From: Callorhinchus milii
Lineage: Eukaryota
Reading direction: 5' to 3'
DNA length: 64,000 nucleotides
NCBI RefSeq assembly: GCF_018977255.1
Contig: NW_024704742.1
Coordinates: 137,702,001 to 137,766,000, forward strand
This document shows positions 2,961 through 62,500 of this stretch, piece by piece. A model generated the notes under the pieces. It saw only the letters and a list, made by a program, of their open reading frames with translations, was not told the origin of the DNA and did no database searches. The translations under genes were made by a program, and so were the position numbers. Positions within the stretch are counted from its first letter, which is position 1, and every line of letters starts with the position of its first letter.

Positions 2961-2999
2961 ACAGACAGAGTTACGGACCCGAACTGGGGGTTGGGGTTG

Positions 3000-5396: not shown

Positions 5397-5446
5397 CTAT
5401 ACAGAGCTCCTTCTTTTCTTGGCCTCAGGATGGAGACGCCTTGAAT
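5397..5446 (-). CDS. Gene A terminal cytoplasmic exon (no Tyr motif)
   Basis: A polypyrimidine tract ending TCATAG precedes AT TCA AGG...GTA TAG, in frame after the phase-1 TM exon. The same exon occurs at 40008-39959. Confidence 0.7.
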
Positions 5447-8400
5447 CTATGAGTGAAGAAAAAGAATGAGATCATGTTTCAGCCAAACAAACACTGTTAT
5501 TGGGAGTCACGGGTTCCCATGTTCTCAAAGGCTCAACAGAATCGCAAAATTCCACCTCATCTCAGCCCTTGAGATGTTTTGCCCTCAAATATCGGATGGT
5601 CCAGACTAGGGGTAAATCCAACAACAACTTGTATTCACACAGGACACGTCTCAGAGCTCTTTATCGTGGCAAGGTTGGATGCCAAGCAAAAGGGGCAGCC
5701 AGAGGAGTGGGCTATGAGGAGACGAGACCTTCCCCATATTCATGTAGGTCTCAAGGTGGGATTTCTCCGAGGGTCCTGGCCAGCAATCCTCCAGATGAAT
5801 TGGTCGCCCACATCACTGCTGGGTGTGGGGGATTTGCTGCGCACTGACTGGCTGCAGCGTTTGCTGACAGAAACACAGTCACTACATCTGACAAAGCACA
5901 TTAGTTATAATAATGCTTCCATTGGATGCAGCGCCTCATCACATGGTTAGACATCTGAATACTCTTCACAGGATGTTTGTTACTGTGAAGTGTAGTGACT
6001 GTGCTTGTTTTGGAATAATAATAATTCTTGCATTTGATACAACGCCTTATCATGATTTCAGGATATCTCAAAGTGTTTCAGGAGATTTTACTGGAAAATA
6101 GTGACTGTGTATTGTGTTGTGTATTATAACCTCTGGAGTGGTGTTCAGTGGTTTTGTATTTAAGATACAAACAGCAAAGGATTGACAAACCTTGTGTTTT
6201 ACAGAGGAGAACGATCCCGATCACCAACAGAAAGAGACATTTAGCTGCTGGCATCAGCCACAGCATCACAGTGATGAAGCTGCCATCACTCTGTGGTCCA
6301 GGTGCGAGGATGTCTCGGGAGTCCCTGCCCTGTGTGTTCTCAGCTACACAGCGGTAAGTTCCCCTCAGCCTCGGGCCCCGGATCTCCCCCACGGTTTGAT
6401 GCTTGTCCGGTACATGTGTGACTGGCGTGTGGTTGGTGTTAATGGGCAGCGTGTTATGCTCGGGGTCGATCCATGTGATGTTGGCCGGTGGTTCCCCCTC
6501 AGCCGAGCACACAATGTCACCTCCGGCCACGAGGGACAGACTCAGGATGACGGCCGGAGCTTCAGGTATAAAGAAACACAGAGATATTCAAACCAAACAA
6601 CTGTCCCCATCGTGTCTGTGCTGGTGCTCACTCCCCCATTGGAGCTCTCTACTCAAACCCCATTCCCTGCTCTCTCCCCATCGTGTCTGTGCTGGTGCTC
6701 GCTCCCCCACTGGAGCTCTCTACTCTAACCACATTCCCTGACTGGAGCTCTCTACTCTAACCACATTCCCTGCTCTCTCCCCATCGTGTCTGTGCTGGTG
6801 CTCACTCCCCCACTGGAGCTCTCTACTCTAACCCCATTCCCTGCTCTCTCTCTCCCCATCGTGTCTGTGCTGGTGTTCGCTCCCCCACTGGAGCTCTCTA
6901 CTCAAACCCCATTCCCTGCTCTCTCCCCATCGTGTCTGTGCTGGTGCTCACTCCCCCACTGGAGCCCTCTACTCAAACCCCATTCCCTGCTCTCTCCCCA
7001 TCGTGTCTGTGCTGGTGCTCGCTCCCCCACTGGAGCTCTCTACTCTAACCACATTCCCTGCTCTCTCCCCATCGTGTCTGTGCTGGTGTTCGTTCCCCCA
7101 CTGGAGCTCTCTACTCTAATCCCTTCTCTTTTCTTGTACATGTTGTTCATAGTGTTCCGCTACAACCACTTTACAAAATATTTTTTTAATATTCGAGTCT
7201 ATTCGAGTCTCAGGGCCTCAGGACGTCTTTTTGTTGGGAAAGACGCTATGCAAATGTAATTTGTATCAATTGTATCAATGTAATTGATAAAATCTCAAGA
7301 GAGTTTTGTGTGAAGAAAATGCTTCAGCCCATTTGACCTCAAAGTTCCCAATCCCCCCCCCACCCCACTGTCGATGTTACAGCATCGACCTCTTTCTGTA
7401 ATAAGCCCCAGTGTCCGGCCTCAACCACCCTTCCTGGTAACTTCCTGTCATTAATTACCTTCTGGACAAAGAAATACTTCCGGGTATCTGTTCTTATTTT
7501 GACCATCACAACCCTGACCCTGTGCCCTCGTGACGTATCTGAGAGCAATGACGTATTTCTTATCAAATCCGTGAAGAAAATCAGTAACTTCTACACCGTG
7601 TGCTGTCGGGTAACTAAATATTGCTGTTCTGATGGCAGTGCAGTGTCTGGGATGGTAACCAGTCTGTCTTATTCCGACACTGATGGACCTGGTCGTGTGT
7701 TTAAGTTTTGCTTTACTCGGAGGGTAATCAGGGATTGGAACAGGTGGCCAGGAAGGGTGGCTGAGGCCAGGACACTGGGACTCATTTAAAAAGCAGTTGA
7801 TACTGTGATTGGGAGTGGGAGGGGCGGTGTTCTGTAAGGATAAGACCAGATGGACCTTCTTCATTCAGACCAATCCTGGACTTGTGAAAAACACATTATT
7901 TATTGTTGGGAAGCTTCCCGCTGCTTGTCCAGCGAGGATCACCCTGGGCTTTAGCTTGTAGGGTTAACAGGAGACAAGTGGGAAGAAACCCTGTCCCCAG
8001 TAACATACTAAAGTCTCCTCCTTTTGAAACCATGTTTCTTGTGCTAATTAACACATGAGGAACAGGGTAAGGAATGAGACAAACATCGTCTGTAGCATTG
8101 CGTCAGTGATGACCTGTTCATTCATCCTTTTCCGTGTCCCACAGAGACAAGAGATCTCTTACCAACAACCTGCAGCCGTGACATGTCCTGTGTCACCTGG
8201 TCCACAAAAAACATGACGTGTACGTGACAGAAATACCGTCCGGTGTCGTTTAACTCCAGGCCCCTGATCTTCAGGGAAGCGTCTCCATCTCCCACATTCC
8301 TGACCAGCTTGTAGCGATTTCCTTCATTCACTGTCTCTGACTCCCTGGAGTTGGTGTGGGCGGTGAGGCCAAGAGTGTAATTAAACACCAGCTGCCCATG

Positions 8401-11400
8401 TGGACTCCCTCTCCTCCAAAGCACTGTGACTGTGGCACGATTCTGGTATGTGTTGGGGATGGTGAAGGAGCAGGGCAGTGTGGCATCACCTCCCTTGGTA
8501 CCAGTCACTGACCGGAGCTTCTCTTCATGACCTGAGACAGGAACAGGATTGGAATAGTGCAGAGCAGTCAGTGTGACAGAGTACATGTTACACACTGTAA
8601 ATCCTGGATATGTTACCTGGTCTTCATGGCACCATCTCCCTCAGGCCTGTGCTCCTCACTCACCCTCTATGAGCCTATGTCCAACACAATGTCTCACACA
8701 CAAAACATGGTATTTTTATAGGACCAATAACATGATTACTGGCAAGTGTAGTGACTGTTTTGCAGCGAATTTACTCAGATGAAGGACCCCCAATGCTTAT
8801 GAAGGCTCTGGGATGCTGCCCTGCATGAGGAGTGCTGTATAAATGCACGTTATCGTTGTTGTTGAACAATCTAATTCAGATGGAGGTTTGGTGGTGTAAA
8901 GAAAATCCCTCCTCATGTTTTGGGGCAGTCGGTTTCCTGATACGTACAGATATCTGTCACCGTTGTTAAGAGTATCTAAACCAGAGAGAGACTTCCACAT
9001 ATATATCCACTCTGAGTATGTATTTCAGAGAGTATTATGTTTGGGGCAATTTGGAGTTCAACCAGCGAAAGCAGCATAATAATAATCATAATAATACCTG
9101 GATTTGATATCTCGCTATTGAGACATCTCAAAGCGCTTCACCAAATATACTGTCCAGTGAATTGACTGTACATCTTGTGGGAGAAATACACCAGTCAATT
9201 GTGCCAGCAGCGATCCAACAACCGTCATGGATTGAGAGAGCAAATTTTTAAAAAATTATTTTTGGAGAGATTTTTGCCCCCAGAGGTGATCCACCAATCG
9301 ACTAAACTACCGGCTTCCTACTTACTGCGAGGTAAACAGAGGCGTGTATAGCAAGGAAACTTGCTCAAGGTTTCTTCCTGCCCAGGAATCAAACCCAAGT
9401 CCTCTCGCTTGTGAGGCGAGTGCTCTAACCACTACACTACAGGACTCCACAGCACAGTTGGCCAGTGACGGCACTGTGTGGCAAGCTTCCTGCTGCTTGT
9501 GTAGATCTGTGGTGTTATTGAGCTGAGTGGGAATGGTCGCGCCCAGTGACTGGTCTGCCAATGAGGCTGATGCCAAATCAGCAGTGCCCTGGAGTACTGC
9601 GACCGCCTGGCTCAGGAACCAGACTAGAGACCCCCACAGAGGGTTGACTCCTGCCCGACGTCCTGTGGCCTTGTATGTCACTGTGGAGCCAGTCCCTGCT
9701 TTACACCGGCTTTTTTGTGGTGGGAGAAACATACAGGGCAGTTTGTGACCTGCCAGCCACCTTGATGTTCTCGAGATCCATTGCCGCGTCCCAGGCTTAC
9801 TGATCACCAGCTGCTGAATCCAGGTCCTCATGTGAGGGGCCTCGGCAAATAGACAACCCACAGTGAGGCCGCCTCAGCCTCCAGGTGCTCAGTGACAGGT
9901 CAGTGTACAGCACAGCCCTCCCTCCCTGCAGCCGCTCACTCACTGTCACCTGTCAGCTCCCTGCTACACACCGTCCATCACAGGGACCACTGGCTCTCTA
10001 TTGCCCGTCCTGGGACGGGACACTTCCCACTGACTCCGGCCCCAGTGAGGAACGTCACGTCTCATTCCCACTTCCCATCGTTCCTCACCTGTAACAATTA
10101 GACGGGTTCCGTGTCCAGTTTCAAACTTTCCGTCCTCACCCTGGAGCTCCACACAACAGGACCATAGCTTATTATTGTCCTCTCCCCTCAGTTGGTTTAT
10201 CTCTATTGTTGCGTCGTTCCTCCTCGGGTTCCCAATCACTCGGTGTCGTTCTCCCTCGTTTACATCAATGACATTTTGATACTTTCGCTGTGAATCCGGC
10301 CCATAATTTGTATATTTAATATACACAGGACCAGTCCTTCCTGCCTTCCACATGATGGTGATGTTCCCTGTGTATCTGGGGTGAGGGTGAGTGAACTTGC
10401 AGTACACGGTGACCGGTGACCCTAACCTGCCGGTCACTGTATCGGGGGTCTCCATCGTCCAGCCATTCCTACTGAGCCCTGTGAGGACACACATGGTGTA
10501 ATGTGAACCAGAACACAACATAAAAGCAAACAGGTAACACTGAGCTTGTACAAGAGCTTGGTTAGGTCACAGCGGGGAGTAATGTGGATAGTATTGCGAT
10601 CCCCACTGTAAGAAGGATAAAAAAGTGATGGAAAAGTTGCAGCTTAGATTCACTGCGATGTCCCCAGGGTTTAGCGGTTTAAGTTTGTAAAGGAGATTTG
10701 AAAGGTTGGGACTTTTTTAGCAAACTGAGAAGGTTAGGGGTGATCTGATAGCGGTCGCTAAACCTCAAAGAGTCACAAAAGATTTTCCTCTCATCAGCCA
10801 GTCAGTCACAAGAGGAATAAATCTAAAACAATCACAAAAAATTAACTAAGAGAGGGTTAGAAACCTTCACTTTACACAGAGAGGATGGGATTGTGGAATC
10901 CTCTGCCACAGACGGAGTTGAGGCAAAGTCCGTCAATAATAATAATGAGTCTTGCATTTCATACAGGTTTGATCACATCTTCGAGATGTCCCAAAGTGCA
11001 TCATAGAATACACTGTAAAGTGAATTGACAGTATATTTTGTGGGCGAAACGCATCAGCCAATTGCGCAGCTGTGTCTCACAAACAGTCGTGGATTGAACG
11101 ACATATTTATAATTTTTTTTGAAGGAATTATTCCCCACGAAAATGTGAACCGCCATTCAACTAACAACCAGGTTCCTACTTACTGCTAAGATAACAGAAG
11201 CGTGTGGTGAGAGGAAAATTGCCCAACTTATGCTAATCGAACCCAAGTCTTGCCTGCGAGGCGAGTGCTCTAACCACTGAGCTACAGGAATCCACAGTCA
11301 AGTCCATAAAAGGGAATTGTTGTTCGAAGTGTATTAAATTAAATGGTGTTGGGGGGAGGGAGAGTGAGCGAGACACAGGGTGGGACTGAGCATCATGTGA

Positions 11401-12042
11401 ACAAAATAAAACTTGTCAAAATGGAATGAACGGGCGGAGCGGCTGTTTTCATGCTATAAAAATACCACCATTTTAACAGTCAGAAACGGGAGTAGAATAC
11501 AGAGCTGCAGTGAGAACCAGCGCCGGCACAGACACTTTGTTTGCGGTCAGCCGGGTGTCTGATAACAGAGGAAACTCATCACTGCGCTGAAGAGTCTTCA
11601 AACCAAACTACTCAGAATTCCACTTATATCTGGAAACGTCTGTGTGTCTGGAATGAGATGTGCACTTTGTCCCCAGAGGGACGTATCCTGCTCACCTCAT
11701 CACAGACAGTATTCTGCGCAGGATGGGAAGATCACCGATTCAACAACAAATTGTATAGCACCTTTCATGTCGGGAGGACATCAAGAGAGGGGTGAGGGGA
11801 AGGGACTGTGGGATGGAGTTCCAAAGGGTGAGGCAAACACTTACACTGTGGGGCTCAGTGAGTAACACAGTTCTGTTCAGTTTAGAGACGGGAATCTTAT
11901 TTGCAGGAGATATCACATGACTGTAATTATTCCAGTAAAAGGTAAAGCAGTAATTAAAGCCAGTCAGGTTTCTGATTGGAAAGTACGTACGGAAGGCCGA
12001 GGCTGACAGGACCAGGGTACAGAGCACAGCTCCCAGCATCAT
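5397..12042 (-). CDS. SIGLEC15-like: Gene A: Siglec-15-like activating-type receptor (leader-V1-V2-C2/TM with Lys-short tail), 409 aa
   Basis: Exons 12042-11991, 10478-10089, 8531-8163, 6559-6191 and 5446-5397 all have AG/GT boundaries and phase-1 junctions, totalling 1230 nt in one frame. V1 motifs CKFTHPHPRYTG and GNPRRND, C2 motif CSAEGEPP and [10 protein letters not shown] resemble Siglec-15 as I recall it. The tail is [16 protein letters not shown]. Confidence 0.85.
6191..6559 (-). CDS. Gene A C2-set Ig plus transmembrane exon (TM Lys codon 6240-6242)
   Basis: CTGAAG acceptor; APAVILSL...[14 protein letters not shown]...GTYRCVAEN...[29 protein letters not shown]; GTTTGT donor; 369 nt. 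Confidence 0.88.
6603..7125. repeat. About 71-bp minisatellite just upstream of the C2 exon acceptor
   Basis: Units recur at about 6608, 6679, 6782, 6857, 6928, 6999 and 7070. Copy number differs in genes B (about 1), C (about 4) and D (about 5). Confidence 0.9.
8163..8531 (-). CDS. Gene A second V-set Ig exon (V2)
   Basis: TCTCAG acceptor and GTAAGA donor, 369 nt. V-set hallmarks: ATLPCSF, VLWRR, DASLKI, DTGRYFC. Confidence 0.9.
9090..9450 (-). mobile_element. tRNA-derived SINE with L2-like 3' tail
   Basis: Head GGAGTCCTGTAGTGTAGTGGTTAGAGCACTCGCCTCACAAGCGAG with A/B boxes and an (ATT)n tail. Many copies, e.g. about 285-660, 4320-4640, 10930-11300, 14100-14400, 29820-30145, 31630-31990, 43430-43790 and 52750-53105. 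Confidence 0.75.
10089..10478 (-). CDS. Gene A N-terminal Siglec-15-like V-set exon (V1; F-strand Arg replaced by Cys)
   Basis: CTCACAG acceptor and GTGAGG donor, 390 nt. WTMETP...YCKFTHPHPRY...MWKAG...GNPRRND...WSCCVELQG. Confidence 0.9.
11991..12042 (-). CDS. Gene A leader exon
   Basis: [17 protein letters not shown] plus GTACGT donor. It splices in frame to V1 (C|GG = Arg). Confidence 0.85.
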
Positions 12043-16153: not shown

Positions 16154-16206
16154 TCACTGCTCAGCTGATCTCCCATTCGATTTGGTGACAACAGCATAAA
16201 TCACAT
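16154..16206 (-). CDS. Gene B terminal exon with ITIM ([17 protein letters not shown])
   Basis: Strong acceptor TTTGTTTCTCTTCCAG. The phase-1 reading gives a V-x-Y-x-x-V ITIM and then TGA. Confidence 0.78.
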
Positions 16207-19200
16207 CTGGAAGAGAAACAAAATGGAGTCAGGACATGTCCCACCACTTGCTGAGAGCTCTGATATAACGTGTGACCCACGTTAAAGTCTATTAGAACTT
16301 TAATATAACTTTTCTAAGGTCCAAATGTCTCAAAGCGAATCACTGTCAAGTGTAGTGACTGTGTATTTTATCAGCAAACCTGGCGGCTAATTTGAATTCA
16401 ACAATGTCCACATACAGCCAAGAAATGGGTGACCAATTTTATTTGGAGAATTGTTGGCCCGGACACCAGGAGAGAGAAATTCCCTTCCCTTTTCCAACAG
16501 CACATTGCATTCCAGACACAGGGAAATTTCCATGTGGAGGTGACATATATATGTGGAATTCTCATTCTGGTTTGGATACTCTTGAGAAGGTGATGTTGGT
16601 TGACCCAAAAAACCTCAATAGATACAGACGGGATCTTGGTTTAACATCGCAATTAAAGGACAGCACTTCTGACAATGTAGCGCTCCTCCCAGTACTGCAC
16701 TGGAGCATCAGCCTGGACTGTGAGCTCGAGGGCCCTGATTTAGGGGCTCGAATCCCCAACCTCCTGACCCAGAGCCAGAGTGCGAGCAGCGAGGCGACTG
16801 GATACACAATAAACCAGAAAAGGCTGACAATACTCACTGTCATCAGAGGCTCTGATGGTGGAATTTGCGTACACTTGGGAAGGAGAGAGAGACAATTATT
16901 AGTAAATAATTTCAATATTGATAACATTTCCATCAGAAATGGGAATCAACTTCACAAAGAAACTATGACACTGGTTATCAAACGGAGTGCGTATATACTG
17001 TACCCGTGGAAATACAGAGAGTGGAGTGCAATGTCTGAAGCTCAGGCCCCAAAATGGGACAGAGTACGAGGAATGAACAGTGAACTGGGGATTGGTGCTA
17101 CTCCAACGCAAGTCACTGGGATCTGATGCTACTCTAATGTCAGGCCCTGGGGATTGGTGAGCACCAACCACAGAGCTAAGACTTCAGGTCTAATCTGTGC
17201 AGTGTAGTGACTGTGTGTCTGTTGGTGAACGCAGCAGCCAATTTGCACTCAGCAATGTTCCACAATCAACCGGGAAGTTTTATAACCAATTTAATCCGGA
17301 CACCCAGAGAAACTCCCTTCTCTTTTCCAAGTGCCGCGGGACATTTAACATTCACCTGAACAGGGACAGATGAGACCTCAGTTTAATATCTCATCTGATG
17401 GACGACGCCTCATACAATGCAGTGTTCCTCCTGCACCGTGCAGCCTGGATTATGTGAATAAAAGACCCAATGTGGGGCTTGAACCCACAATTATCTGACT
17501 GAGGTGAGAGTTGCTGCCGCCTGTGCCAGGCTGAGAGTTGACCCCGGACAGGAAGGGGAACGCAGACTCTTGTCGGCTGAGAGGCAAGGCAATGCTGGCT
17601 CCCCCCGTGTGATACGTTTCAAGCCAGTCAGGAAACTTGGCGTCTTGTTCGACCCTTAACTGTCCTTTCTACCCCATATCCATGCCATGACCCACCTTGG
17701 CTTCCCCCACCTACGCAACATTGCCCAACTCCCCCACTGCCTCTCCCCTCAGACTGCCGACAACTTCATACACACACTCATCACCTCAAGGCTCGACTAC
17801 AGAAAATACCTCCTTGTTGGCCTCCAAAACTCTTCCCTCCACAAGCTTCAGATCATCCAGAACTCTGCAGCTTGTGTCTTCCCCACAGCAGCTCCATAAT
17901 CCAATCATCCTCACCCACGCCCTCCTACATCTCTGACCTGCTAACACCCTATCAACCTGTTTGCTCCCTCCATTCAGCAAACTCCGGCCTGCTTCATGTC
18001 TCCAACCAGATGCCCCCCTCCATTGGCGGCCTGGCCCTACCCTTTGGAACGCCATCCCACAATCCCTTCTCCTCGCTCTCTCCACTGCCTCCTTCAAGGC
18101 CCGAATCATGACTCTCCTTTTCGTGCGTGACTTCAGCCGCCCACCTACATCTCTGTGACCCACGTTAAAGTCTATTAGAACTTTAATATAACTTTTCTAA
18201 AGTCCAAATGTCTCAAAGCGAATCACTGTCAAGTGTAGTGACTGTGTATTTTGTCAGCAAACCTGGCGGCTAATTTGAATTCAACAATGTCCACATACAG
18301 CCAAGAAATGGGTGACCAATTTTATTTGGAGAATTGTTGGCCCGGACACCAGGAGAGAGAAATTCTCTTCCCTTTTCCAACAGCACATTGCATTCCAGAC
18401 ACAGGGAAATTTCCATGTGGAGGTGACATATATATGTGGAATTCTCATTCTGGTTTGGATACTCTTGAGAAGGTGATGTTGGTTGACCCAAAAAACCTCA
18501 ATAGATACAGACGGGATCTTGGTTTAACATCGCAATTAAAGGACAGCACTTCTGACAATGTAGCGCTCCTCCCAGTACTGCACTGGAGCATCAGCCTGGA
18601 CTGTGAGCTCGAGGGCCCTGATTTAGGGGCTCGAATCCCCAACCTCCTGACCCAGAGCCAGAGTGCGAGCAGCGAGGCGACTGGATACACAACAAACCAG
18701 AAAAGGCTGACAATACTCACTGTCATCAGAGGCTCTGATGGTGGAATTTGCGTACACTTGGGAAGGAGAGAGAGACAATTATTAGTAAATAATTTCAATA
18801 TTGATAAGATTTCCATCAGAAATGGGAATCAACTTCACAAAGAAACTATGACACTGGTTATCAAACGGAGTGCGTATATACTGTACCCGTGGAAATACAG
18901 AGAGTGGAGTGCAATGTCTGAAGCTCAGGCCCCAAAGCTGGGACAGAGTACGAGGAATGAACAGTGAACTGGGGATTGGTGCTACTCCAACGCAAGTCAC
19001 TGGGATCTGATGCTACTCTAATGTCAGGCCCTGGGGATTGGTGAGCACCAACCACAGAGCTCATACTTCACAGGTCTAATCTGTGCAGTGTAGTGACTGT
19101 GTGTCTGTTGGTGAACGCAGCAGCCAATTTGCACTCAGCAATGTTCCACAATCAACCGGGAAGTTTTATAACCAATTTAATCCGGACACCCAGAGAAACT

Positions 19201-35545: not shown

Positions 35546-35587
35546 AGTAATTAAAGCCAGTCAGGTTTCTGATTGGAAAGTACGTAC

Positions 35588-46133: not shown

Positions 46134-46172
<39 letters not shown>

Positions 46173-49100: not shown

Positions 49101-52100
49101 TCTGCAGCTCGTGTACTGTCCCGCACCAGGCTTCGGGACCACATCACTCCCACCCTCGCTCGCCTCCACTGGCTCCCCATCCCCCAGAGGATTGATTTCA
49201 AGATCCTCATCCTCACCTACAAGGCCATTCACGGCCTTGCTCCCTCCTACCTCTCCAACCTACTATCCCCCTACCTACCTGCCCGTACCCTCCGTTCCTC
49301 TGGCTCCGGTCTGCTCCACGTCCCCCGCCCCAACCGCCCTACTATCGGTGGTCGGGCCTTCAGCCTCTCAGCCCCGAGGCTCTGGAACTCCATCCCCCAG
49401 TGCCTTCGCCTTGCTTCCTCCCTTTCCTCCTTCAAGGCCGGTCTCAAAACCTTTCTCTTTGACCGTGCCTTCAGCTCCCCTCTCGACTCTCTTCCTCCTC
49501 CTCGCTCCCTCCCTTCCCTCCCCTCACCCTGACCATTTCCCCCTCCTCTCTCCCTCCCTTCCCTCCCCTCACCCTGACCATTTCCCCCCTGCTCGGGTCA
49601 TGACCCAACTGTGCAGCGCCTTGGGACGTCCTCCTGACGTGAAAGGCGCTCTATAAATGGAATCTTGTTGTTGTTGTTGTTGTTGATGTCCCCAGGGTTT
49701 AGCGGTTTAAGTTTGTAAAGGAGATTTGAAAGGTTGGGGCTTTTTTAGCAAGCTGAGAAGGTTAGGGGTGACCTGATAGCGGTCGCTAAACCTCAAAGAG
49801 TCACAAAAGATTTTCCTCTCATCAGCCAGTCAGTCACAAGAGGAATAAATGTAAAACCATCACAAAAAATTAACTAACAACAACAACAACAAGATTCCAT
49901 TTATAAAGCGCCTTTCACGTCAGGAGGACGTCCCAAGGTGCTGCACAGTTGGGTCATGACCCGAGCAGGGGGGAAATGGTCAGGGTGAGGGGAGGGAAGG
50001 GAGGGAGCAAGGAGGGGGGAAATGGTCAGGGTGAGGGGAGGGAAAGGAGGGAGCAAGGAGGGGGAAATGGTCAGGGTGAGGGGAGGGAAGGGAGGGAGCG
50101 AGGAGGGGGAAGAGAGTCGAGAGGGGAGCTGAATGCACGGTCAAAGAGAAAGGTTTTGAGACCGGCCTTGAAGGAGGAGAGGGAGGAAGCGGCGAAGGCA
50201 CTGGGGGATGGAGTTCCAGAGCCTGGGGGCTGAGAGGCTGAAGGCCCGACCACCGATGGTAGGGCGGTTGGGGCGGGGGACGTGGAGCAGACCAGAGCCA
50301 GAGGAACGGAGGGTACGGGCAGGTAGGTAGGGGGATAGTAGGTTGGAGAGGTAGGAGGGAGCAAGGCCGTGAATGGCCTTGTAGGTGAGGATGAGGATCT
50401 TGAAATCAATCCTCTGGGGGATGGGGAGCCAGTGGAGGCGAGCGAGGGTGGGAGTGATGTGGTCGCGGTGTCTGGTGCGGGACAGTACACGAGCTGCAGA
50501 GTTCTGAATGACCTGCAGTGTGGAGGGAGGTGGCGGGAAGGCCGACGAGGAGAGAGTTCCCGTAGTCCAGCCTTGAGGTGACAAAGGCGTGAACTAGGGT
50601 TTCAGCCGCGTGAGGGGTGAGGTAGTGCCGTAGTCTGGCGATGTTCCGGAGGTGATGGAAGGCGGTGCCAGTTGTGGTGCGGATGTGAGGGAGAAAGGAC
50701 AGCTCAGGGTCGAACAAAACGCCGAGGTTCCTGATGGCTTTGAGAGGTGGAGAGTGCAGCCTTGGATGCTGATGGTGTCAGCGCCTGAGGTGCGGAGGCG
50801 CTGACGTGAGCCAATCAGGAGGGCCTCGGTTTTTCGCACGTTGAGCTGAAGAAAGTTGTCTCTCGTCCAGGACTCGATGTCGGACAGGCAGCTGTCAGGA
50901 CATCGGTGGTCGTGGAGTTGAGAGTAGAGGAGGAAAGGTAGAGTTGGGTGTCATCCGCATACATGTGGAAGTTAACTCCATGTCTGCGGATGATGTCACC
51001 ACAGGGGGAGCATATAGAGTGTGAAGAGGAGGCGACCGAGGACAGAGCCCTGAGGGACACCACATGAGACAGTGCGGGGGGTGGAGGAGAAGCCATTCGT
51101 CGAGACAAAGTGAAGACGGTGAGAAAGGTACGACCTAAACCATTCAAGGACAGTGCCTTGAAGTTTGAGGTGGGAGGACAAGCGGTGGAGTAGGATAGCG
51201 TGGTCGACCGTATCGAATGCTGCCGATAGGTCGAGGAGGACGAGGAGACAGAGGGAGCCCTGGTCACAGATGGTCAGGATATCATTGGTGACCTTGACCA
51301 GGGCAGTTTCTGTGCTATGGGCAGCACGGAAACCTGACTGAAGGGGTTCGAAAAGAGAATGGGTGGAAAGGAAAGAGCGCAGTTGGGAGGCGACAACTCT
51401 TTCCAAGACCTTGGAGAGAAAGGGGAGGTTGGAGATGGGCCGGTAGCTTGATAGCTGCGACGCATCAAGGGAGGGTTTTTTCAGGGTGGGCGTGATGGTG
51501 GCAGTTTTTAATGGAATGGGGACAGAGCCAGAGGAGAGGGACAGGTTTATGATGTCAGTGATATGTGGGGCAAGAAAGTGGAGCTGGGAGATAAGGAGTG
51601 GAGTGGGGATGGGGTCAAGGGAGCAGGTGGTTGGTTTTAGGGATAGGATGAGTTCAGTGACAGAGGGTGGGGAAACGGGTACGAAGGTGTGTAGGGGAGG
51701 ATGGGTAGGAGTCGGAGTGTGGGAGGGAAGGGGTGGGTGGTGGGTGGAAGTTGGAGGGGAAGTGACCGCGGAGCGGATTCCCTTGATCTTGGATTCAAGG
51801 AAATCCAGCATCTCCTCGCAGTGAAGGTTGGAGGAGATGACCTGCGCGGCGTGGCGGGGGGGACGGAGGAGTCGGGTTGTGGTGGAAAACAGTAGCCTGG
51901 GGTTGTTCTTCGCCTCCAGGATTATCCTGGAGTAGAAGGACGACTTGGCCGAGGCTAGAGTGGAGCGGTAAATTTTGAGGAGGTCCAGCCAGATTTGTCG
52001 GTGGACCGTTAGGCCAGATTTGACACAGGTGCGTTCAACGGCCCGCACCTGACTTTTCAGTGAGCGGAGGTGGGTGGTGTACCAGGGGGAGGAGCGGGAG

Positions 52101-53857
52101 TAGGAGACAGTGCGGGAAGTGATGGGGGCAAGAGTATCGAGTGTGGAGGAGAGGGTATTGTGGAGGAGGGAGAGAGGAGAAGAGGGGTCGGTGAGGGTTG
52201 AAGGCCAGAGGGAGAGGAGTTCAGAGGACTCCAAGGCATCGGTTAGGGATTGTGGGGGTAATTTCTTCCAAGGGCGGTAGAAGATGGTGGTGGGTCTGGT
52301 GGAGGTGGGGAGGGGGGTGGAGGTGGTGAAGGAGATGAAGTAGTGGTCAGAGATGGCCTTGTCGGTAATAGTGACATCCGAGACACTGAGGCCCCGGGTG
52401 ATCACCAAATCGAGTGGGTGGCCGTGACTGTGAGTGGGGGAGTTTATGTGTAAGGAGAGGTTGAGTGAGGAGAGCAGGGAAGAGAAGTCTGTGGAGATGG
52501 AGCAGGAGGGTGTGAAGTGTAGGTTAAAGTCGCCCAGGATGATGAGGCGATCGGAGGGGTGGGAGAGGGTGAAGTGCTCAAAGGAGGGGAAAGAGCCAGT
52601 GGAGTAGGGGGATAGGGCAAGTGGTGTCCTTGAGATAAGGGCAACACCACCGCCACGGTTAGAGAGGGTTAGAAACCTTCACTTTACACAGAGAGGATGG
52701 GATTATGGAATCCTCTGCCACAGACGGAGTTGAGGCAAAGTCCGTCAATAATAATAATGAGTCTTGCATTTCATATAGGGTTTGATCACATCTTTGAGAT
52801 GTCTCAAAGTGCATCATAGAATACACTGTAAAGTGAATTGACAGTATATTTTGTGGGCGAAACGCAGCAGCCAATTGCGCAGCTGTGTCTCACAAACAGT
52901 CGTGGATTGAACGACATATTTATAATTTTTTTTGAAGGAATTATTCCCCACGAAAATGTGAACCGCCATTCAACTAACAACCAGGTTCCTACTTACTGCT
53001 AAGTAAACAGAAGCGTGTGGTGAGAGGAAAATTGCCCAACTTATGCTAATCGAACCCAAGTCTCTTGCCTGCGAGGCGAGTGCTCTGACCACTGAGCTAC
53101 AGGAATCCACAGTCAAGTCCATAAAAGGGAATTGTTGTTCGAAGTGTATTAAATTAAATGGTGTTGGGGGGAGGGAGAGTGAGCGAGACACAGGGTGGGA
53201 CTGAGCATCATGTGAACAAAATAAAACTTGTCAAAATGGAATGAACGGGCGGAGCGGCTGTTTTCATGCTATAAAAATAGCATCATTTTAACAGTCAGAA
53301 ACGGGAGTAGAATACAGAGCTGCAGTGAGAACTAGCGCCAGCACAGACACTTTGTTTGCGATCAGCCGGGTGTCTGATAACAGAGGAAACTCATCACTGC
53401 GCTGAAGAGTCTTCAAACCAAACTACTCAGAATTCCACCTATATCTGGAAATGTCTGTGTGTCTGGAATGAGATGTGCACTTTGTCCCCAGAGGGACGTA
53501 TCCTGCTCACCTCATCACAGACAGTATTCTGCGCAGGATGGGAAGATCACCGATTCAACAACAAATTATATAGCACCTTTCATGTCGGGAGGACATCAAG
53601 AGAGGGGTGAGGGGAAGGGACTGTGGGATGGAGTTCCAAAAGGTGAGGCAAACACTTACACTGTGGGGCTCAGTGAGTAACACAGTTCTGTTCAGTTTAG
53701 AGACGGGAATCTTATTTGCAGGAGATATCACATGACTGTAATTATTCCAGTAAAAGGTAAAGCAGTAATTAAAGCCAGTCAGGTTTCTGATTGGAAAGTA
53801 CGTACGGAAGGCCGAGGCTGACAGGACCAGGGTACAGAGCACAGCTCCCAGCATCAT
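39959..53857 (-). CDS. SIGLEC15-like: Gene C: Siglec-15-like activating-type receptor, 414 aa, intron 1 expanded by two L2 insertions
   Basis: Exons 53857-53806, 44636-44247, 42872-42489, 41135-40767 and 40008-39959 total 1245 nt in frame. TM Lys at 40816-40818; V1 reads LSCCVE. Confidence 0.82.
44821..46047 (+). repeat. Perfect 88-bp tandem monomer array (13 full copies plus 83 bp), GC/CpG-rich
   Basis: The unit GGGGAGCGGC...GGTACTTAAACTCGACGCCGGAGCGAGTGCAGCCAGTC recurs at 44821, 44909 ... 45965. Confidence 0.97.
46280..49532 (+). pseudogene. L2 ORF2 (endonuclease/reverse transcriptase), frameshifted
   Basis: ORF track pieces 46271-46753, 46486-47961 and 48192-49532 overlap in different frames and together form one APE-RT polyprotein. 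Confidence 0.85.
49877..52660 (-). mobile_element. 5'-truncated second copy of the same L2, inverted, tail-to-tail with the first
   Basis: (CAA)n tail at about 49877. ORFs 50996-52408 and 50141-50584 are almost identical to copy 1. There is an internal deletion of about 100 bp near 52560. The flanks rejoin the sequence seen at about 10845-10850; no clear TSD. Confidence 0.93.
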
Positions 53858-54306: not shown

Positions 54307-54331
54307 NNNNNNNNNNNNNNNNNNNNNNNNN
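54307..54331. other. Assembly gap (25 N)
   Basis: Run of N. Confidence 1.
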
Positions 54332-56525
54332 CCCCTCACTGCCCCCCTCACCCCCACTATCCCTCTGCCCCCTACCGACCCCTCAATCCCCCTCGTGGCC
54401 CCCACACTGCCCCCCTCACAAATCTTCCCCCCTCACACACTCTCCCCCAAACCCACTGCATCGTTGATTCCAAGGCATTGAATTCAGATTGTCTTATTCA
54501 CTATTTTTCCTACTGAACCTGATCTCCACAGTAAATATTCTGTTCTGAAATTACTGAATAAAATGCTTGTGAACGTATGGCTCGGTGGTGTATGTTAATG
54601 TGGCCGCAGTCAGGCGAACCTGTGAGACAGTAATGGAGTATTGTAGTTCAGTGGTGACAGCACTCGTCGCAAGCAACAGTTCCCGGGTTCGATTCCGGGC
54701 CGACCCAAACGGTAGTCAAGTTTCCTTACTCCACCGCCGGTGTTTACACAGCAGTAACAAGGAACCCGGTTGTTAGTCGATTGGTGCATCGCTTTTTCTG
54801 GGGTAACAATCCCTTCAAAATATTTCTCTTTTTTCATTTGGTCACTCAATCCACGACTGTTTGTGGGACACTGATGTGCGCAATTATCTGCCGCGTTTCA
54901 CCCACAAAAATATATTATAATAATCTGTCATATCTCTCCTCGTCTTCTCCCACAGCTGCCTCTGTGCACCCATTACTCATCAGGTGTCAGTCTGGTGAGT
55001 CAGTAGCACTCTCGCCTGTGGGTCAGCGGGTTGTGGTGTTCACCATCCAGGTGCCGTCCTTCAGATGAGACGTTAAACCAAGGACCTGTTTGCCTGACAT
55101 TAAAGATCCCTCGACACTGATGGAAAAGAGAAGCGAGTTCCTCCCGGCTTCCTGCGCGACAATCAACCAGATGAATTGTAGACTAATTGTCTTCTAGGAA
55201 TGCCTACCTTGAAGAAGTTCTGCTCTTCACTTCACCGTGACTTTCTTTCTTCCCTTTTACCCTGCTCACCTTCTTAGCTATCTGTTTCCCTTCTTGTGTT
55301 TGATGATGTTTTCATTAAAACCTGTTTTCACAGCCACATCTCTTTCCTCAGTAACTGTCTTAAACTGCAACTAATTCCATATGGATTCCCTCTGAAATTC
55401 CACCCTTCCTGCTTTTAATCCACCCACAATCATCAAAATTCAGCGCTCTTCTGATCACTGTTCTTGCCGACTCATGATATCTACTGTCTCCAGCGTGTGC
55501 CGACACGTGCAAACTCTCAACCTTTCCCTTCAGCAGCTCCGACACACTTTATCTCAGAACTGCCCTGAACCTCATCTCTGTTTTGTCCTTCACCTTATTC
55601 AGCGCTTTAACAAAAAACTCTTTTTATTTCTTTCAGATGATATGGCTGTGTGCAAAGTGGTTGCTGTGTTTGTCCACGAACACAGTCAGTACCTGTTGAA
55701 GACCTTTGAAACTTTCTAACATTACAGATTCTGCATCAAATACAGAAATGTAACGCTTATTCAAACATTTGTTCACTACTTCAGTGAGAGAGTAGTAACT
55801 TATGGAGGGTTCCCTTTGGAGACGGTGGAAGCAAATTGTGTTAGAATACATTAGAATATATTGCACAGAAACCGGCCATTCAGCCCAACTGGGCTTTAGC
55901 TCCACATGAGCCTCCTCCTGCTCTTCCTCAACTAAGCCATCAAGCATCACCTTCTATTCCTTTCTCCCTCAAGTACCTCTCCAGCTTCCTCTTAAATACA
56001 TCTATGCTATCAGCCTCAACAACTCCTTGTGGCAGATGTTCCACATTCTCACTACTCTGTGTGAAGACATTTATTCTTCAAACGTCTAACTTCCCTATTT
56101 AATCCACTTGTGACAATTTTATATTGATGGCCCCTGGTTTTGATCTCCAGATTTCCTTTTTTCTACTGCCATGATGTTATCCTAACATGTCAGCTACTCC
56201 ATGCCCTTTTATCCCATCTCTATCCTATCTAAATATGTTACACCTGCAATGTTTAATTGCCAGTCCTGGTCTTTCTGTAGCCACGTTTCAGTAATCCCAA
56301 ATATATCTGTTTCCTCACTACGAATTACTGCCTCAGTCCTCCTGTTTTATTTCGGATGCTGTGAACATTGCTGTACAGACAGTTTCATTCATTATTATTC
56401 GTTGCTCCTCTCATTTTATTTTTGAAAGTCTTTTCACCCTTCTGTTCTATAATTGTATTAGGTCCCTGACCACTTATATTCTCCTTATTTGTGACTTCGG
56501 TCCAGCTTGGGTCATTTCCTTCTGA
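54332..56525 (-). repeat. Inverted copy of about 12492-14620
   Basis: ORFs 54585-56425 mirror ORFs 12592-14426 on the opposite strand. Confidence 0.92.
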
Positions 56526-59500
56526 CACTCATCACCTCAAGGCTCGACTACAGAAAATACCTCCTTGTTGGCCTCCAAAACTCTTCCCTCCACAAGCTTC
56601 AGATCATCCAGAACTCTGCAGCTTGTGTCTTCCCCACAGCAGCTCCATAATCCAATCATCCTCACCCACGCCCTCCTACATCTCTGACCTGCTAACACCT
56701 ATCAACCTGTTTGCTCCCTCCATTCAGCAAACTCCGGCCTGCTTCATGTCTCCAACCAGATGCCCCCCTCCATTGGCGGCCTGGCCCTACCCTTTGGAAC
56801 GCCATCCCACAATCCCTTCTCCTCGCTCTCTCCACTGCCTCCTTCAAGGCCCGAAACATGACTCTCCTTTTCGTGCGTGACTTCAGCCGCCCACCTACAT
56901 CTCTGCCCTCCCTCACCACATCCCTGCTCCCTCCACGCTCGGGTCCTGATCCCCGATTCTCCAGCGACGTGCGACGTCCTCCCGTCTTGAAAGACACTTC
57001 ACAAATGTAATTTTGTTGTTGTTTCTTACCTGAATCTGTTTGCCGGGCCGGTGCTGGGGTAACCACACTGTAGATCACAGCAGCTTCGTCTGTCAGAGAC
57101 ACAACAGTCAGCTCCTTCTCCAGGTCTCTGCAGCTTCCCCTTTGCCACATTCTACCTTCCCTGGTATTTATTTATTATTGTTTTGTTTTGGAGGGATTAT
57201 TATTAGGCTCTGTGTGGAGTAAGGAAACTTGCCCAAGGTTTCACCCTCTGCGTGGAATTGAACACAGGTGTCTCATTTGCAAAGCGAGTGCTCTAACCAC
57301 TGAGCTACAGGACTCCAGACCATTCAGAATACTGCAGCTCATGTCCTTCCCGCACCAGACTCCATGATACCATCACCCCCACTCTCGCGCAGCTCCACTG
57401 GCTCCCAAACCCTCATTGGATAGAATTCAAAATCCTCATCCTTGCCTTCAAGGCCCTCGACAGACTTCTGCCCTCCTATATCTCTGTGACCCGCTAACTC
57501 CTTATCAAACTGTCCACTCCCTCCACTCAGCAGGCTGCGGCCTGCTCCACATTCACCGCTCAGCCCGCCCCACCATCGGCAGCCATGCCTTCAGCCTCTC
57601 ACCTACCCTTTGGAAAGCCATCCCACATTCCCTTTGCCGTGCTCCCTCCCTTGCCTCCTTCAAGGCATGTCTCAAGACTCTCTTTTCGACTGTGTGTTCG
57701 GCCACTCCGGCCCTCCACCATCCCTTACCCCAAAACCCAGGTCCAAATCCCTGACTGTCCAGCGCCTTGGGACACCCTCCCGACGTGATACAAATGCAGT
57801 TTGCATTGTATTGTAAACCTGACAGCCAATGTGCATTCAGCAATGTCCCACAAACAGCTATGAAGTGGGTGACCAATTATGTTTGGAGCATTGTTGGCCA
57901 GGACATCAGGAGAGAGAAAGTCCCTTCTCTTTTCCAATATCACATTGCATTCCAGACACAGGGAAATTTCCATCTGACTGAGAGGTGAGAGTGCTGCCAA
58001 CTGAGCCAGGCTGACAGTTAACCCCGGACAGGAGAGGGACCGCAGATCTCTGTCGGCTGAGAACCGACACAATGCCGGCTCCGTCCCCGTGTGATATGTT
58101 TACTTACCTGAATCTGTTTGCCGGGCCGGTGCTGGGGGAACCACACTGTAGATCACAGCAGCTTCGTCTGTCAGAGACACAACAGTCAGCTCCTTCTCCA
58201 GTTTCCCCTTTGCCACATTCTACCATGTCCCAGGGTGGACGTAGCCTCTATAAGGCTCCCTCTCAGCCGTCCCAGGACAGAGCCCTGAGGTTCCCTCTCA
58301 CTACAGCACCAATTGTACAATCAGAACATTTATACCCATTTGGAGGCCCTTTGACTGTGAGGCTCTGAAAGGCTCTCCCTTTAGCCCCACTCCCCTTTTC
58401 CCATTGGCTTTCCAAATATTATTGGTGACTTGGCAGATGCATTTTGCCGACTCCCAGGTCCGGGGCACAGCTGTGAGCTGTATATTCTCCGAAATGAGGT
58501 AAGCAGGATGAGTCTCTCCGTGGAGACAGACAGAGTGAGCCATTCCATATATGGAAATTTCCACGTGTAGGTGACTTACATGGGTGGAATTCTCAGTCTG
58601 GTTTGGATGCTCTGAAGCACAGTGATGGGTTTCTGTGTGTGAAGACACCCAGAGCCAGAGGTGAGATGGTCACTGACTGAGCTCGGCTGAGACCCAGTGA
58701 CCGGATATTGAAAGCACGGGGTCAAAATTGTGGCATCGTTAATCGAGACAGAACAGTTACCGTCTCCTGCAGGCGGCTGAGGTCGGACCATTTTGTTGCT
58801 AACCATTTGATGACTGAAAAAAAGAGAAAACGTTTTATATTGTACATTTTATAGAGGTTGGAAGATAAAACCTTATATGTAATAATGCTTACATTTCATT
58901 CAGCGTCTTTCACGTCAGAAAGACGTTCATAACACTTCACAGTGTAGGAGTCAGTAATTAATATGTTAAATAATATCTTAAATGATATTTGCGATGTTTA
59001 TATATTTGAAACATATGATCAATCTCATATGAGGGGAGTCGGTTGTGATGAGCTTTGTAGAGTGGAAATAAAAGCCTATTTATAAGCAACAAACTGTTTT
59101 CATTCCTTATCAGTCATTTTCTCATGGAAATATGTTCTGCTGCTGGAGAGAGCCTGTGTTGCATTAGTTTTTACAAGGGAACCATCTTGCAAAAGTGAAA
59201 GGTCACCTCATCAACAGCTCGAGGATGGAGTGGAGGGAGAGGTGAGAGCAAAGATGGTGAGCAACAACCCATGGCAGAGCTTTGGCAAGGAAGGGCAGGT
59301 TGGAAATGGGTCGGTAATTTATGTGTTTGAAAGGTGCTTTATAAGGGCAAGTTGTTGTTTTACACTTGACACCATCTCTTTGTGTGTGTGTGTTTGTGTG
59401 TGTGTGAGTGAGTGTGTGTGTTGGGGTGAGTTGGGGTGAGTTGGTGTGTTTCTATGTGTGTGTGAGTGTGGACTCTGTGCTGCTGAGATAGCAGGAGCTG

Positions 59501-62500
59501 AGTGGGAAGAATCGCTGCTCTCAGTAGTGCAGAGTAGACACCAGTTGGTCATTTGGGGACGGTGTCTCTTTGGGCTTTTCTGGCTGCAAAGTTAGATGTT
59601 TGGCAACGGAATGCGATGGTCTCGAGTTCGGTTCAGTGCTCGGAAGGTCTGCAGTGGGTCTGCACTTGGAAGGGCAGAGCAGTCACTGGGGGCAGGGAAT
59701 CCTCCCACTCAGCTCCTGCTAACCCTGCAAGTCAAAGCCCTAACAGTGAGGGTGGTCCAAGCTGGAGAGGGAAGCAGGAAGCTTTCCAGATACAGGGCTC
59801 AACAGCAATTAGGAACTTGGAAGTGGATGTAACAGTGAAGGGATTAGAAAGACGCTCTCACCTCTCTGAACACTGACAGCAATGTCCGACACCATCACCT
59901 AAAGAGACCAAAGAAAGATGAGAGATTGATTTAGATGGTTTGCTGATGACCTTTGTTAGTGCACATGTTATTATAGGGAAAGACTTGTGCAAACCCTCCT
60001 CTTCCTGTTGTGTGGTGTAACCATGGCTACTGAAGCAGGAAGCCAGGCTCATATCACCATCCAAAGCCATTAGCTCCACTGTGTCTGTGCTGGTGCTCTC
60101 TCCCCCACTGGAGCTCTCTACCCTAATCCCATCCCTGCTCTCTCTCCCCATGGCGTCTGTGCTGGTGCTCTCTCCCCCACTGGAGCTCTCTACCCTAATC
60201 CCATCCCTGCTCTCTCTCCCCATGGCGTCTGTGCTGGTGCTCTCTCCCCCACTGGAGCTCTCTACCCTAATCCCATCCCTCCTCTCTCTCCCCATGGCGT
60301 CTGTGCTGGTGCTCTCTCCCCCACTGGAGCTCTCTACCCTAATCCCATCCCTGCTCTCTCCCCATGGCGTCTGTGCTGGTGAAGGAGAGATTGGTGGCCC
60401 CATTAATTGTTATGGGGAACTTTGTGTGAGGAATCAGGTTTCCATGTGTTTCTCTCTGCGTCTCTAACTGTATGTGAGGATTTATCTCCTAACAATCAAT
60501 GGATATTGCGACACCCTGTCTGTGCTGGCGCTCAAGTGAATAAGGTAATAGGAGGATATCTGATGATTAGGTAACAGCAGAGGGAATATCTCGCCTGTGG
60601 TTATCAGGATCTGGGGCGACCCGTCCTGTGTCTGAGCAGATACCCAGTGTGTGGATACACAGCGTTACACAGCAATTACAATTGACAGTGAATGTTGTTA
60701 TGGAGGTAACCGCGGCAGATAATCTGCTGAGCCAGAGGTGAGAGTGCGAGCGGCTGAGACAGACTCACTTGGAATAAACATTACCTTTGTCTGTAAACAC
60801 CTACCTCTCTTTACCCGCCAGATAATGATGGCAGTCACCAGAACGAGCAGCACCACAATGGATACCATAATATAGACAGTACGACCACCATTGCTCTGTG
60901 GTCCAGGTGCGAGGATGTCTCGGGCGTCACTACCCTGTGTGTTCTCAGCTACACAGCGGTAAGTTCCCCTCAGCCTCGGGCCCCGGATCTCCCCCACGGT
61001 TTGATGCTTGTCCGGTACATGTGTGACTGGCGTGTGGCTGGTGTTAATGGGCAGCGTGTTATGCTCGGGGTCGATCCATGTGATGTTGGCCGGTGGTTCC
61101 CCCTCAGCCGAGCACACAATGTCACCTCCAGCTCCATCACCGGCCACGAGGGACAGACTCAGGATGACGGCCGGAGCTTCAGGTTTCAAGAAATACAGAG
61201 TTATTCTAACCAAACAACTTTCCCCATCGTGTCTGTGCTGGTGCTCACTCCCCCACTGGAGCTCTCTACTCTAACCCCATTCCCTGCTCTCTCCCCATCG
61301 TGTCTGTGCTGGTGCTCGCTCCCCCACAGGAGCTCTGTGCTCTAACCCTATTCCCTGCTCTCTCCCCATCGTGTCTGTGCTGGTGCTCTCTCTCCCACTG
61401 GAGCTCTCTACTCTAACCCCATTCCCCGCTCTCTCCCCATCGTGTCTGTGCTGGTGTTCGCTCCCCCACTGGAGCTCTCTACTCTAACCCCATTCCCCGC
61501 TCTCTCCCCATCGTGTCTGTGCTGGAGCTCGCTCTCCCACTGGAGCTCTCTACTCTAAGTCCTTCTGTTTTGCAGTAGATTTTCATGTTGTTCACAATGT
61601 TCCCTTTGAAACACAAAATTTATTTTTCCAATATTCAAGTCTATTCGGGTCCCAGGGCCTTGGGACTTCAAACTTCACTTCACCCCCTCCTGCTCTACCT
61701 CTGCTGACTTCTCCTTCCTCATCTCCTTCCTCATCTCCTTCCTCAACATCTCCCTCTAAATCCACTCAGCCACCCAATTCCGCAGATCACTTGCGGTCTC
61801 ACCGTCTCGTATCTCACCATCACCGACAAAGCCATCTCAGACCATCACTTCATCTCCCTTAACCCCTCAATCCCTCTCCCCACCGCCATCCAACCAACCT
61901 CACTCTGGAGAAAAATTTCCCTCATTGCCTGTCTACCCACGGACATCATAAACTTCTCCCTGTCCACTTGTACCATTCCCACCCCTTTAATAACATTCAC
62001 CATCACTCCTCTCCTTAACAATACCTGCCGTGGACCCTTTCCTGTTCTCAAACTGCAGCCCTATCTCCAACCTCCCTTTCCTCTCCAAAGTCCTGGAAAG
62101 AGTCGATGCTTCCTAGCTTCGTCTTTCCTTTCCGGCCACTCCCATCACGAACCCCTCCAATCAGGTTTCCATGCCACCCACAGCATGGAAACAGCCCTGG
62201 TCAAAGTGACAAATGACATTCTGTTCATCGGCAACGAGCGCTGCCTCTGCCTCCTCATTCTCCTTGACCTCTCTGCTGTCTTTGGCACTGTTGACCATTC
62301 TATCCTCATCTGCCGCCTCTTCTCTCACCTCAACCTTCACGGTTCTGTCCTTGAATAGTTGATATCGTACCTCTCACAATGCCTCCACTTAATCTCCAAA
62401 AACATTTTGTCCTCTAGCCCCGCACCGTCTCGTGCGGAGTTCCTCAGGGCTCTGTCCTTGGTTCCCTCCTCTTCAATATCTATATGCTCCCTCTTGGTGA

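Follow-up and report, generated by a model that had tools for sequence, protein, structure and literature searches.

A probable Siglec-15-derived paired-receptor cluster around SIGLEC15 in the elephant shark

What does an array of alternating, nearly identical immunoglobulin-type receptor genes close to SIGLEC15 in the elephant shark encode, and from which Siglec lineage did it arise? We addressed this question in a stretch of 64,000 nucleotides from Callorhinchus milii (MU249832.1:137,702,001-137,766,000, assembly GCA_018977255.1; hereafter the window, meaning the whole stretch), which protein matches of 93-100% identity assign to this species and which was placed through the locus record of gene A, corresponding to window positions 3397-14042 at 100% identity. 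Four minus-strand genes follow one another in the order D (inhibitory), C (activating), B (inhibitory) and A (activating), and after them comes the leader exon of a fifth gene. An earlier sequence-only reading had proposed four genes alternating between activating and inhibitory types, with a near-identical ectodomain in A, B and C, and we found both the alternation and the similarity (91-95% identity, two tail types); its limits for the array were exact, 5397 being the stop codon of A and 61176 the start of the C2 exon of D. We consider it likely that the window belongs to a multigene paired-receptor cluster that derives from Siglec-15, lies at the SIGLEC15 locus and combines activating members coupled to adaptors with inhibitory members bearing immunoreceptor tyrosine-based inhibitory motifs (ITIMs).

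Domains and signalling ends of the window genes

Gene models were rebuilt from open reading frames, splice sites and paralogue alignment (Table 1; product numbers such as P0001 denote database proteins). Every exon lies on the minus strand with AG/GT borders in phase 1-1, and the genes repeat one layout, consisting of a 52-nt leader exon with a GTACGT donor, a V1 exon of 390 nt, a V2 exon of 369 or 384 nt, and an exon of 360-372 nt in which C2 and the transmembrane segment are encoded together (exon 3 in the numbering used below for the homology break). The open reading frame start preceding V1 might pass for a leader, but the true leader is a separate exon 1.5 kb upstream. The 409-aa model of gene A is identical to an NCBI product at MU249832.1 and the C2-transmembrane-tail portion of gene C is identical to NCBI product P0206 (146 aa), while the full 414-aa model of gene C returned no record on exact look-up. 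V1 and V2 of gene D lie beyond the window end.

Pfam recognised two V-set domains and one Ig/I-set domain. The first V-set domain (V1) matched human Siglec-15 (7ZOZ) with an E value of 4.5e-16, followed by CD33 at ~4e-5, with Siglec-8 also weaker; V1 is homologous to Siglec-family V-sets and is not closest to the CD33-related branch. It has in common with Siglec-15 the WxMExP start, FTHPH, GNPRRND and the F strand, and of the V-set disulfides of Siglec-15, C64-C142 and C95-C104, the B-F pair is present (VYCKF ... SC[R/C]VEL) and the C95-C104 pair absent. An AlphaFold (AF2) model built on P0001 had a mean predicted local distance difference test score (pLDDT) of 80, and the single-domain Foldseek match was 7zoz_A (TM 0.86, root-mean-square deviation 2.0 A); a search with the whole model was uninformative, being dominated by generic multi-Ig proteins. 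Taken alone, V2 also had 7ZOZ as its best solved match (E 3.5e-9), before CD276 and TIM-3 and not CD300 or pIgR; for this reason we read it as an old copy of the Siglec-15 V exon that has diverged. C2 was 49% identical to the C2 of one shark classical Siglec-15 and 33% to a mammalian-type sequence (P0047). The earlier assignment of V1 and C2 to the Siglec-15 type, and not to the CD33-related one, agrees with these comparisons. The encoded receptors would be type I membrane proteins composed of a leader, a Siglec-15-type V1, a diverged Siglec-15-type V2, a Siglec-15-type C2 and a transmembrane segment.

The genes end in two ways. A and C encode a helix with a central Lys (PAAKCLF) and then one short last exon without Tyr, whereas B and D, which have no Siglec-15-type transmembrane Lys, encode a neutral helix and, several kb downstream, 60-nt cassette exons for DEAAVIYSV[V/F].PAPARQTDS. 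Ectodomain identity was high across types (A-B 94.5%, A-C 93.3%, B-C 91.4%), while identity over the transmembrane segment and tail was 100% for A-C, 95.7% for B-D and ~20% for activating vs. inhibitory type. Near-identical ectodomains are joined to opposite signalling ends, which is the arrangement of paired receptors, and both the Lys-bearing transmembrane motif (CLIPLVKFLLLL) and the C-terminal ITIM (VIYA[VT]V) are kept across chimaera, sharks and rays. Mammalian Siglec-15 signals by pairing with an adaptor that carries an ITAM (immunoreceptor tyrosine-based activation motif). Because A and C have a mid-membrane Lys and a short tail, as mammalian Siglec-15 does, they would be expected to signal through an ITAM adaptor of DAP12/DAP10/FcRgamma type; a literature search for DAP12 in elephant shark returned nothing relevant. 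B and D, with a neutral helix and two or three ITIMs, would recruit SHP-type phosphatases. The two types would recognise identical or overlapping sets of ligands by way of V1 and V2.

Splicing of the B and D tails onto the ITIM exons is a prediction from exon structure. The sequence-only reading had B and D ending in several VIYxVV ITIMs, and the exons are indeed there with valid splice sites, yet several observations weigh against the modelled tails. One of the three Tyr motifs in B, VIYSVF, departs from the consensus. No transcript or annotated product with the modelled ITIM tails of B or D was found by exact look-ups or by a search with the transmembrane segment and tail of B, which was aimed at transcript-derived open reading frames and matched only the truncated NCBI model of C. 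Ensembl models of the close paralogues P0003 and P0004 read through the donor of the transmembrane exon into an ITIM-free tail, and the NCBI isoform P0001 joins a B-type V1/V2 to the C2 and transmembrane segment of A, so transcript structures at this locus are unsettled. B and D could then end soon after the transmembrane exon by read-through or use other exons, leaving the VIYxVV exons as unused relics, a possibility to which the lack of a terminal exon for D within the window would add, as would a possible extra cytoplasmic exon of B (21899-21951) that is out of frame if placed directly after the transmembrane exon. We regard this as unlikely, since the ITIM exons are intact, with strong polypyrimidine-AG acceptors and GTAAG-type donors all in phase 1-1, since those of B and D are 100% conserved across 576 bp, and since the B tail exon borders agree with those of the paralogue model P0002 and the terminal VIYA[VT]V motif is present in inhibitory forms of Heterodontus and Heptranchias.

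Other candidate tail sequences were rejected. The 'DCGTRHSLQLSE' exon of P0002 has no correctly placed counterpart in B or D, and the exon next to it, the possible extra exon just mentioned, is present and cannot follow the transmembrane exon in frame. A 72-bp repeat after the transmembrane exon of B was considered as a set of coding repeats; it proved to be a minisatellite within introns, devoid of any Tyr motif, and is found upstream of exon 3 in every gene as well.

A chondrichthyan family beside classical Siglec-15

The classical one-V SIGLEC15 gene of C. milii (XP_042192107.1 / V9KK68), which is separate from the window genes, occupies MU249832.1:137,599,691-137,611,010; it is encoded on the same strand at a distance of 91 kb below the window start, so that the array lies at the SIGLEC15 locus. 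Its flanks contain exons of a further V1-V2-C2 gene and copies of the intergenic blocks of the window. This additional family member, on the other side of classical SIGLEC15, has the opposite orientation (L001 28685-31320; MU249832.1:137,589,691-137,592,326). With family members on both sides, the cluster extends over at least 176 kb and the classical gene is embedded in it. The array also runs past the window itself, as seen from the leader exon of the fifth gene and from positions 12-1817, where homology to intron 1 of genes A and B continues up to the window edge.

Relatives were collected with an exhaustive HMMER search using V1 of B, which returned 123 proteins whose domains, transmembrane segments and tails were classified, with 30 named; a V1-restricted homologue search had returned two C. 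milii proteins only, because its word pre-filter was too narrow. The V1-V2(n)-C2 architecture was found in the chimaera, in the sharks Heptranchias, Cetorhinus, Chiloscyllium, Heterodontus, Mustelus and Scyliorhinus, and in the rays Pristis, Leucoraja, Amblyraja, Hemitrygon, Rhinoraja, Mobula and Narcine, with up to three V2 copies in skates. Both a conserved Lys-bearing transmembrane form (…CLIPLVKFLLLLITGIIL…KIKD) and ITIM forms occur in this chondrichthyan family, and cartilaginous fishes additionally have a classical one-V Siglec-15 and a further V1-V2' subfamily (subfamily B).

In the maximum-likelihood tree all Siglec-15-type V1 domains grouped together, apart from CD300-like V domains (support 100/100). 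The window family and the V1-V2' subfamily formed a clade restricted to Chondrichthyes (98/94), while classical chondrichthyan Siglec-15 (C. milii P0048/P0164) fell in another clade (100/99), the base of which with bony-vertebrate Siglec-15 was unresolved. The window genes neither group with classical Siglec-15 nor share its orthologous architecture of one V-set, one C2 and a transmembrane segment, having V1-V2-C2 instead; they are paralogues, and not the orthologue, of Siglec-15. A, B, C and P0002 formed a species-specific clade (100/100), and the activating and inhibitory V1 domains of elasmobranchs were older, separate lineages. These separate lineages indicate that the duality of activating and inhibitory forms is old and that the near-identity within C. 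milii comes from recent duplication and homogenisation; what sets C. milii apart is that its ectodomains were homogenised recently. The earlier proposal that this lineage had independently built the family from a Siglec-15-like ancestor therefore stands as regards the ancestor and fails as regards the lineage, since the family is not private to C. milii and occurs in sharks, rays and chimaeras with old elasmobranch forms.

Compared with classical Siglec-15, which ranges from mammals to fishes, the window genes have the same V1 type, with its WxM(E/Q)xP start, FTHPH, GNPRRND and a B-F disulfide next to the Arg position, a homologous C2, the mid-membrane Lys and short tail in A and C, and the same chromosomal locus. 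They differ in the second V-set between V1 and C2, in the ITIM partners and many tandem copies, in falling in a separate clade, and in lacking the C95-C104 loop and Tyr87, with the Arg lost in A and C. The primate pairs Siglec-5/14 and Siglec-11/16 are adjacent genes with near-identical ectodomains kept so by concerted evolution, one partner carrying ITIMs and the other a charged residue in the transmembrane segment that serves a DAP12-type adaptor. The window genes resemble them in the near-identical ectodomain, the one ITIM and one charged-transmembrane partner, and the adjacency, but those pairs are CD33-related Siglecs confined to primates, in which a single V-set is combined with C2 domains, whereas the genes described here stem from a Siglec-15 ancestor in Chondrichthyes; the resemblance is convergent.

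ITIM-like tails and additional V-sets occur elsewhere among Siglec-15-like genes. The 'siglec15-like' genes of ray-finned fishes (Conger XP_061119044.1, Polyodon XP_041100982.1, Labeo XP_050988178.1) share with the window genes a Siglec-15-type V-set and C2, with a neutral transmembrane segment and ITIM-like tails as in B and D, but have one V-set, fall in another clade of the V1 tree and come without demonstrated near-identical activating partners. Multi-V Siglec-15-like proteins were found in the lungfish Protopterus (P0025, P0028), the gar Atractosteus (P0032) and the axolotl Ambystoma (P0034). There too the Siglec-15 V exon has been multiplied (Protopterus XP_043934105.1 is V1-V1-C2, and XP_043935463.1 has seven V1), but all the repeats are of V1 type and keep the Arg, whereas the chondrichthyan V2 is a distinct old type with His; these multiplications are independent. 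Of the additions that the sequence-only reading had attributed to this lineage, the second V domain is itself derived from Siglec-15 and the ITIM tails of B and D are predicted, and neither ITIM-bearing Siglec-15-like genes nor multi-V forms are confined to it. Within cartilaginous fishes, the skate MDIRs (modular domain immune-type receptors) form a multi-V Ig family with activating and inhibitory members whose domains are described as CD300/TREM/pIgR-like (PMC3031540). The window genes likewise belong to a multigene, multi-V family with activating and inhibitory forms; they would be set apart from MDIRs by that description, V1 being separated from CD300-like V domains at 100/100.

Array construction and assembly

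Self-comparison of the window revealed a tandem duplication of ~35 kb, the unit being an inhibitory gene followed by an activating gene (1323-9892 vs. 35544-44224 at 96-98%; 19660-28501 vs. 56525-64000 at 94-99%). Homology between A and B (96.6%) spans exons and introns from the leader onwards and stops abruptly at the junction of the C2 stalk and the transmembrane segment. The pairs would have arisen through this recent duplication of an inhibitory-plus-activating unit, with homogenisation 5' of the part of exon 3 that encodes the transmembrane segment. A minisatellite of 71-72 bp lies beside exon 3 (6604-7123, 24484-24856, 41180-41449, 60083-60381 and 61221-61558), upstream of it in all four genes and in B and D also downstream of the transmembrane exon, and its closeness to the activating/inhibitory homology break might favour unequal exchange. 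The FG loop of V2 differs among A, B and C (8163-8531 vs. 28857-29240 and 42489-42872), most differences across V2 are non-synonymous, though in small counts, and pN/pS across V1, V2 and C2 involves too few changes for a claim of selection.

The N run between C and D (Table 1) lies in non-coding DNA, 450 bp upstream of the ATG of C and 2.7 kb past the last recognisable exon of D, and is crossed by no exon or reading frame. The flanks of the run depart from the order of the paralogous unit: that on the left stops at the equivalent of 12491, and that on the right begins in a G-rich minisatellite, runs inverted from ~14700 to 12492 and, at 56525, meets the equivalent of 19660. From these positions, ~5 kb of the A/B unit is missing between C and D, including the counterpart of the terminal exon of B. 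The C-D block at the gap is a rearrangement or a mis-join, and the adjacency of C and D depends on the scaffold join.

This raises the question of whether the assembler falsely duplicated a haplotype of A and B and set it in tandem as C and D, in which case there would be one real pair only. The 94-99% identity of the units would fit such an error, as would the coincidence of the N gap, the inverted block and the missing segment exactly between C and D. Intron 1 of C, which measures 9.2 kb, adds to the suspicion with its repeat array and long interspersed nuclear element (LINE) copies. The array comprises 14 copies of an 88-bp unit at 100% identity (44818-46047), directly upstream of the V1 exon, and may reflect either very recent expansion or an error of assembly; the LINE copies are inverted, carry reverse-transcriptase open reading frames (47048-49593 and 50010-52557), are 97.3% identical and make up a large palindrome. 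However, a 15-bp indel in the FG loop of V2 and clustered changes in V1 separate A from C, the synonymous divergence between their V1 exons (0.11) is no lower than that between A and B, kb-scale insertions distinguish the units, and L001 and older gene sets contain additional, distinct paralogues (P0002, P0004, P0007, P0008). We consider a false duplication improbable on these grounds and retain two pairs in the window as the preferred account.

Some other features of the array bear on single genes. The last intron of B contains a 1.9-kb tandem duplication at 99.1% identity (16271-18155 and 18154-20040), and an insertion of 2.7 kb separates an orphan second B-type leader exon from the leader of B.

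Table 1 Positions of genes, exons, codons and structural features in the window.
Feature	Positions	Strand	Details
Gene A (activating)	5397..12042	-	leader 11991-12042, V1 10089-10478, V2 8163-8531, C2+transmembrane (Lys) 6191-6559, tail 5397-5446; 409 aa
Gene B (inhibitory)	16154..32453	-	leader 32402-32453, V1 30786-31175, V2 28857-29240, C2+neutral transmembrane 25587-25946
Gene B Tyr-motif exons (predicted)	21245-21304, 20165-20224, 16154-16206	-	VIYSVF; VIYSVV; terminal VIYAVV, then stop; from splice borders and paralogue P0002
Gene C (activating)	39959..53857	-	leader 53806-53857, V1 44247-44636, V2 42489-42872, C2+transmembrane (Lys) 40767-41135, tail 39959-40008
Gene D (inhibitory, partial)	57030..61176	-	C2+neutral transmembrane 60805-61176, predicted ITIM exons 58108-58167 and 57030-57089 (both VIYSVV)
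Leader exon of fifth gene	1367..1418	-	identical leader, GTACGT donor; V1 exon just beyond window start
Orphan second B-type leader exon	35588..35639	-	SASASR
Possible extra cytoplasmic exon of B	21899..21951	-	phase 2 to 1; D copy 58761-58813; homologous to part of P0002 tail
R143-equivalent codon in V1 of B	30850..30852	-	CGT (Arg), WSCRVEL; alignment to 7ZOZ
Same codon in A	10153-10155	-	TGT (Cys)
Same codon in C	44311-44313	-	TGT (Cys)
A/B homology break	6289 (B equivalent 25676)	-	inside exon 3, between C2 stalk and transmembrane segment
N gap and inverted block	54307..56525		N run 54307-54331, then 2.2-kb inverted copy of 12492 to ~14700

Public annotation of the locus contains chimeric, truncated or misnamed models. 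NCBI LOC103174418 has gene A right, and its isoform X1, P0001 (414 aa), combines an AFR-type leader and B-type V1/V2 with the C2, transmembrane segment and tail of A. P0001 is a prediction that wrongly fuses near-identical paralogues, or else a genuine read-through transcript, and if genuine it would be an activating receptor bearing the Arg-type V1; exact look-ups with P0001 and with models B and C gave no match. The 146-aa fragment of gene C (P0206, 39959-41135) carries the misnomer 'triple functional domain protein-like', and relatives are labelled Siglec-15, Siglec-12, CD276-like or uncharacterised.

The sialic-acid site and the meaning of the pairing

In human Siglec-15, R143 on strand F provides the essential salt bridge to sialic acid, and W44, Y87, R153, Y154 and E155 contribute (PMC10264397). 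The equivalent of R143 is Arg in B and Cys in A and C (WSCCVEL and LSCCVEL, respectively), a single CpG transition, while V1 retains Trp44 and Glu155 as well as an aromatic residue at 154. At the Arg position V2 invariably has His. Since B keeps the Arg it may sense sialylated self, whereas A and C, with Cys at this site, would probably have weak sialic-acid binding or none, judging from the residues there. Loss of the Arg in A and C would fit a role as activating counter-receptors or decoys.

The same tendency was seen among relatives. Activating forms mostly lack the Arg, with Leu in Cetorhinus, Chiloscyllium, Heterodontus, Pristis and Mobula, Trp in C. milii P0007 and Arg in Mustelus only, and inhibitory forms mostly have it (Heptranchias, Pristis, Leucoraja). 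Counting against a lectin function divided in this way, the human contact Tyr87 has no counterpart in V1, the inhibitory C. milii paralogue P0002 has Cys at the Arg position, and the independent contrasts between activating type and Arg loss are too few for a phylogenetically corrected test. The family might instead consist of Siglec-15 descendants that are no longer lectins and bind protein or other non-sialylated ligands, the state of the Arg being incidental. This would account for its replacement in A, C, P0002, P0007 and most elasmobranch activating forms, for the His in V2, and for the absence of Tyr87 and of the C95-C104 loop of human Siglec-15; cloned zebrafish Siglec-15, moreover, binds glycans poorly (PMC7226832). 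Retention of the Arg, together with Trp44, the aromatic residue at 154 and Glu155, in B and most inhibitory forms argues the other way, and the Arg-to-Cys change, as a single CpG transition, could be recent. We regard a complete loss of lectin function as possible and do not favour it.

Returning to sialic-acid recognition, it is conceivable, and we suggest it tentatively, that these genes are chondrichthyan paired sialic-acid receptors from the Siglec-15 lineage, a fast-evolving multigene counterpart of the CD33-related cluster that was reached independently, in which the Arg was lost repeatedly from activating members (to Cys, Trp or Leu) and kept in inhibitory ones. Loss from activating members would be the expected outcome if pathogens exploit the inhibitory receptor and activating copies evolve in response as counter-measures. 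Least certain in this account are how the inhibitory tails are spliced, whether the assembly is intact at the gap and whether sialic-acid binding has been retained.

A search of the full-text literature on Siglec-15 in sharks, Callorhinchus, elephant shark and cartilaginous fish found no description of the family, in line with the sequence-only reading, which had known of none. The family is new within known kinds, namely Siglecs and paired receptors, and no new category is involved. Fish Siglecs have been listed as Siglec-1, CD22, MAG and Siglec-15 only, with CD33-related inhibitory Siglecs said to be absent from fish (PMC7226832), and the genes described here contrast with that view of four conserved fish Siglecs and no inhibitory family of the CD33-related type. 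In the oldest living lineage of jawed vertebrates, Siglec-15, seen until now as a single conserved gene, has expanded into a clustered family whose members have an additional V domain and come as matched activating and inhibitory forms; the logic of paired receptors would then have originated independently among the Siglecs. Arg and Cys versions of the site on otherwise near-identical ectodomains would furthermore constitute a natural experiment on the residue essential for sialic-acid binding.

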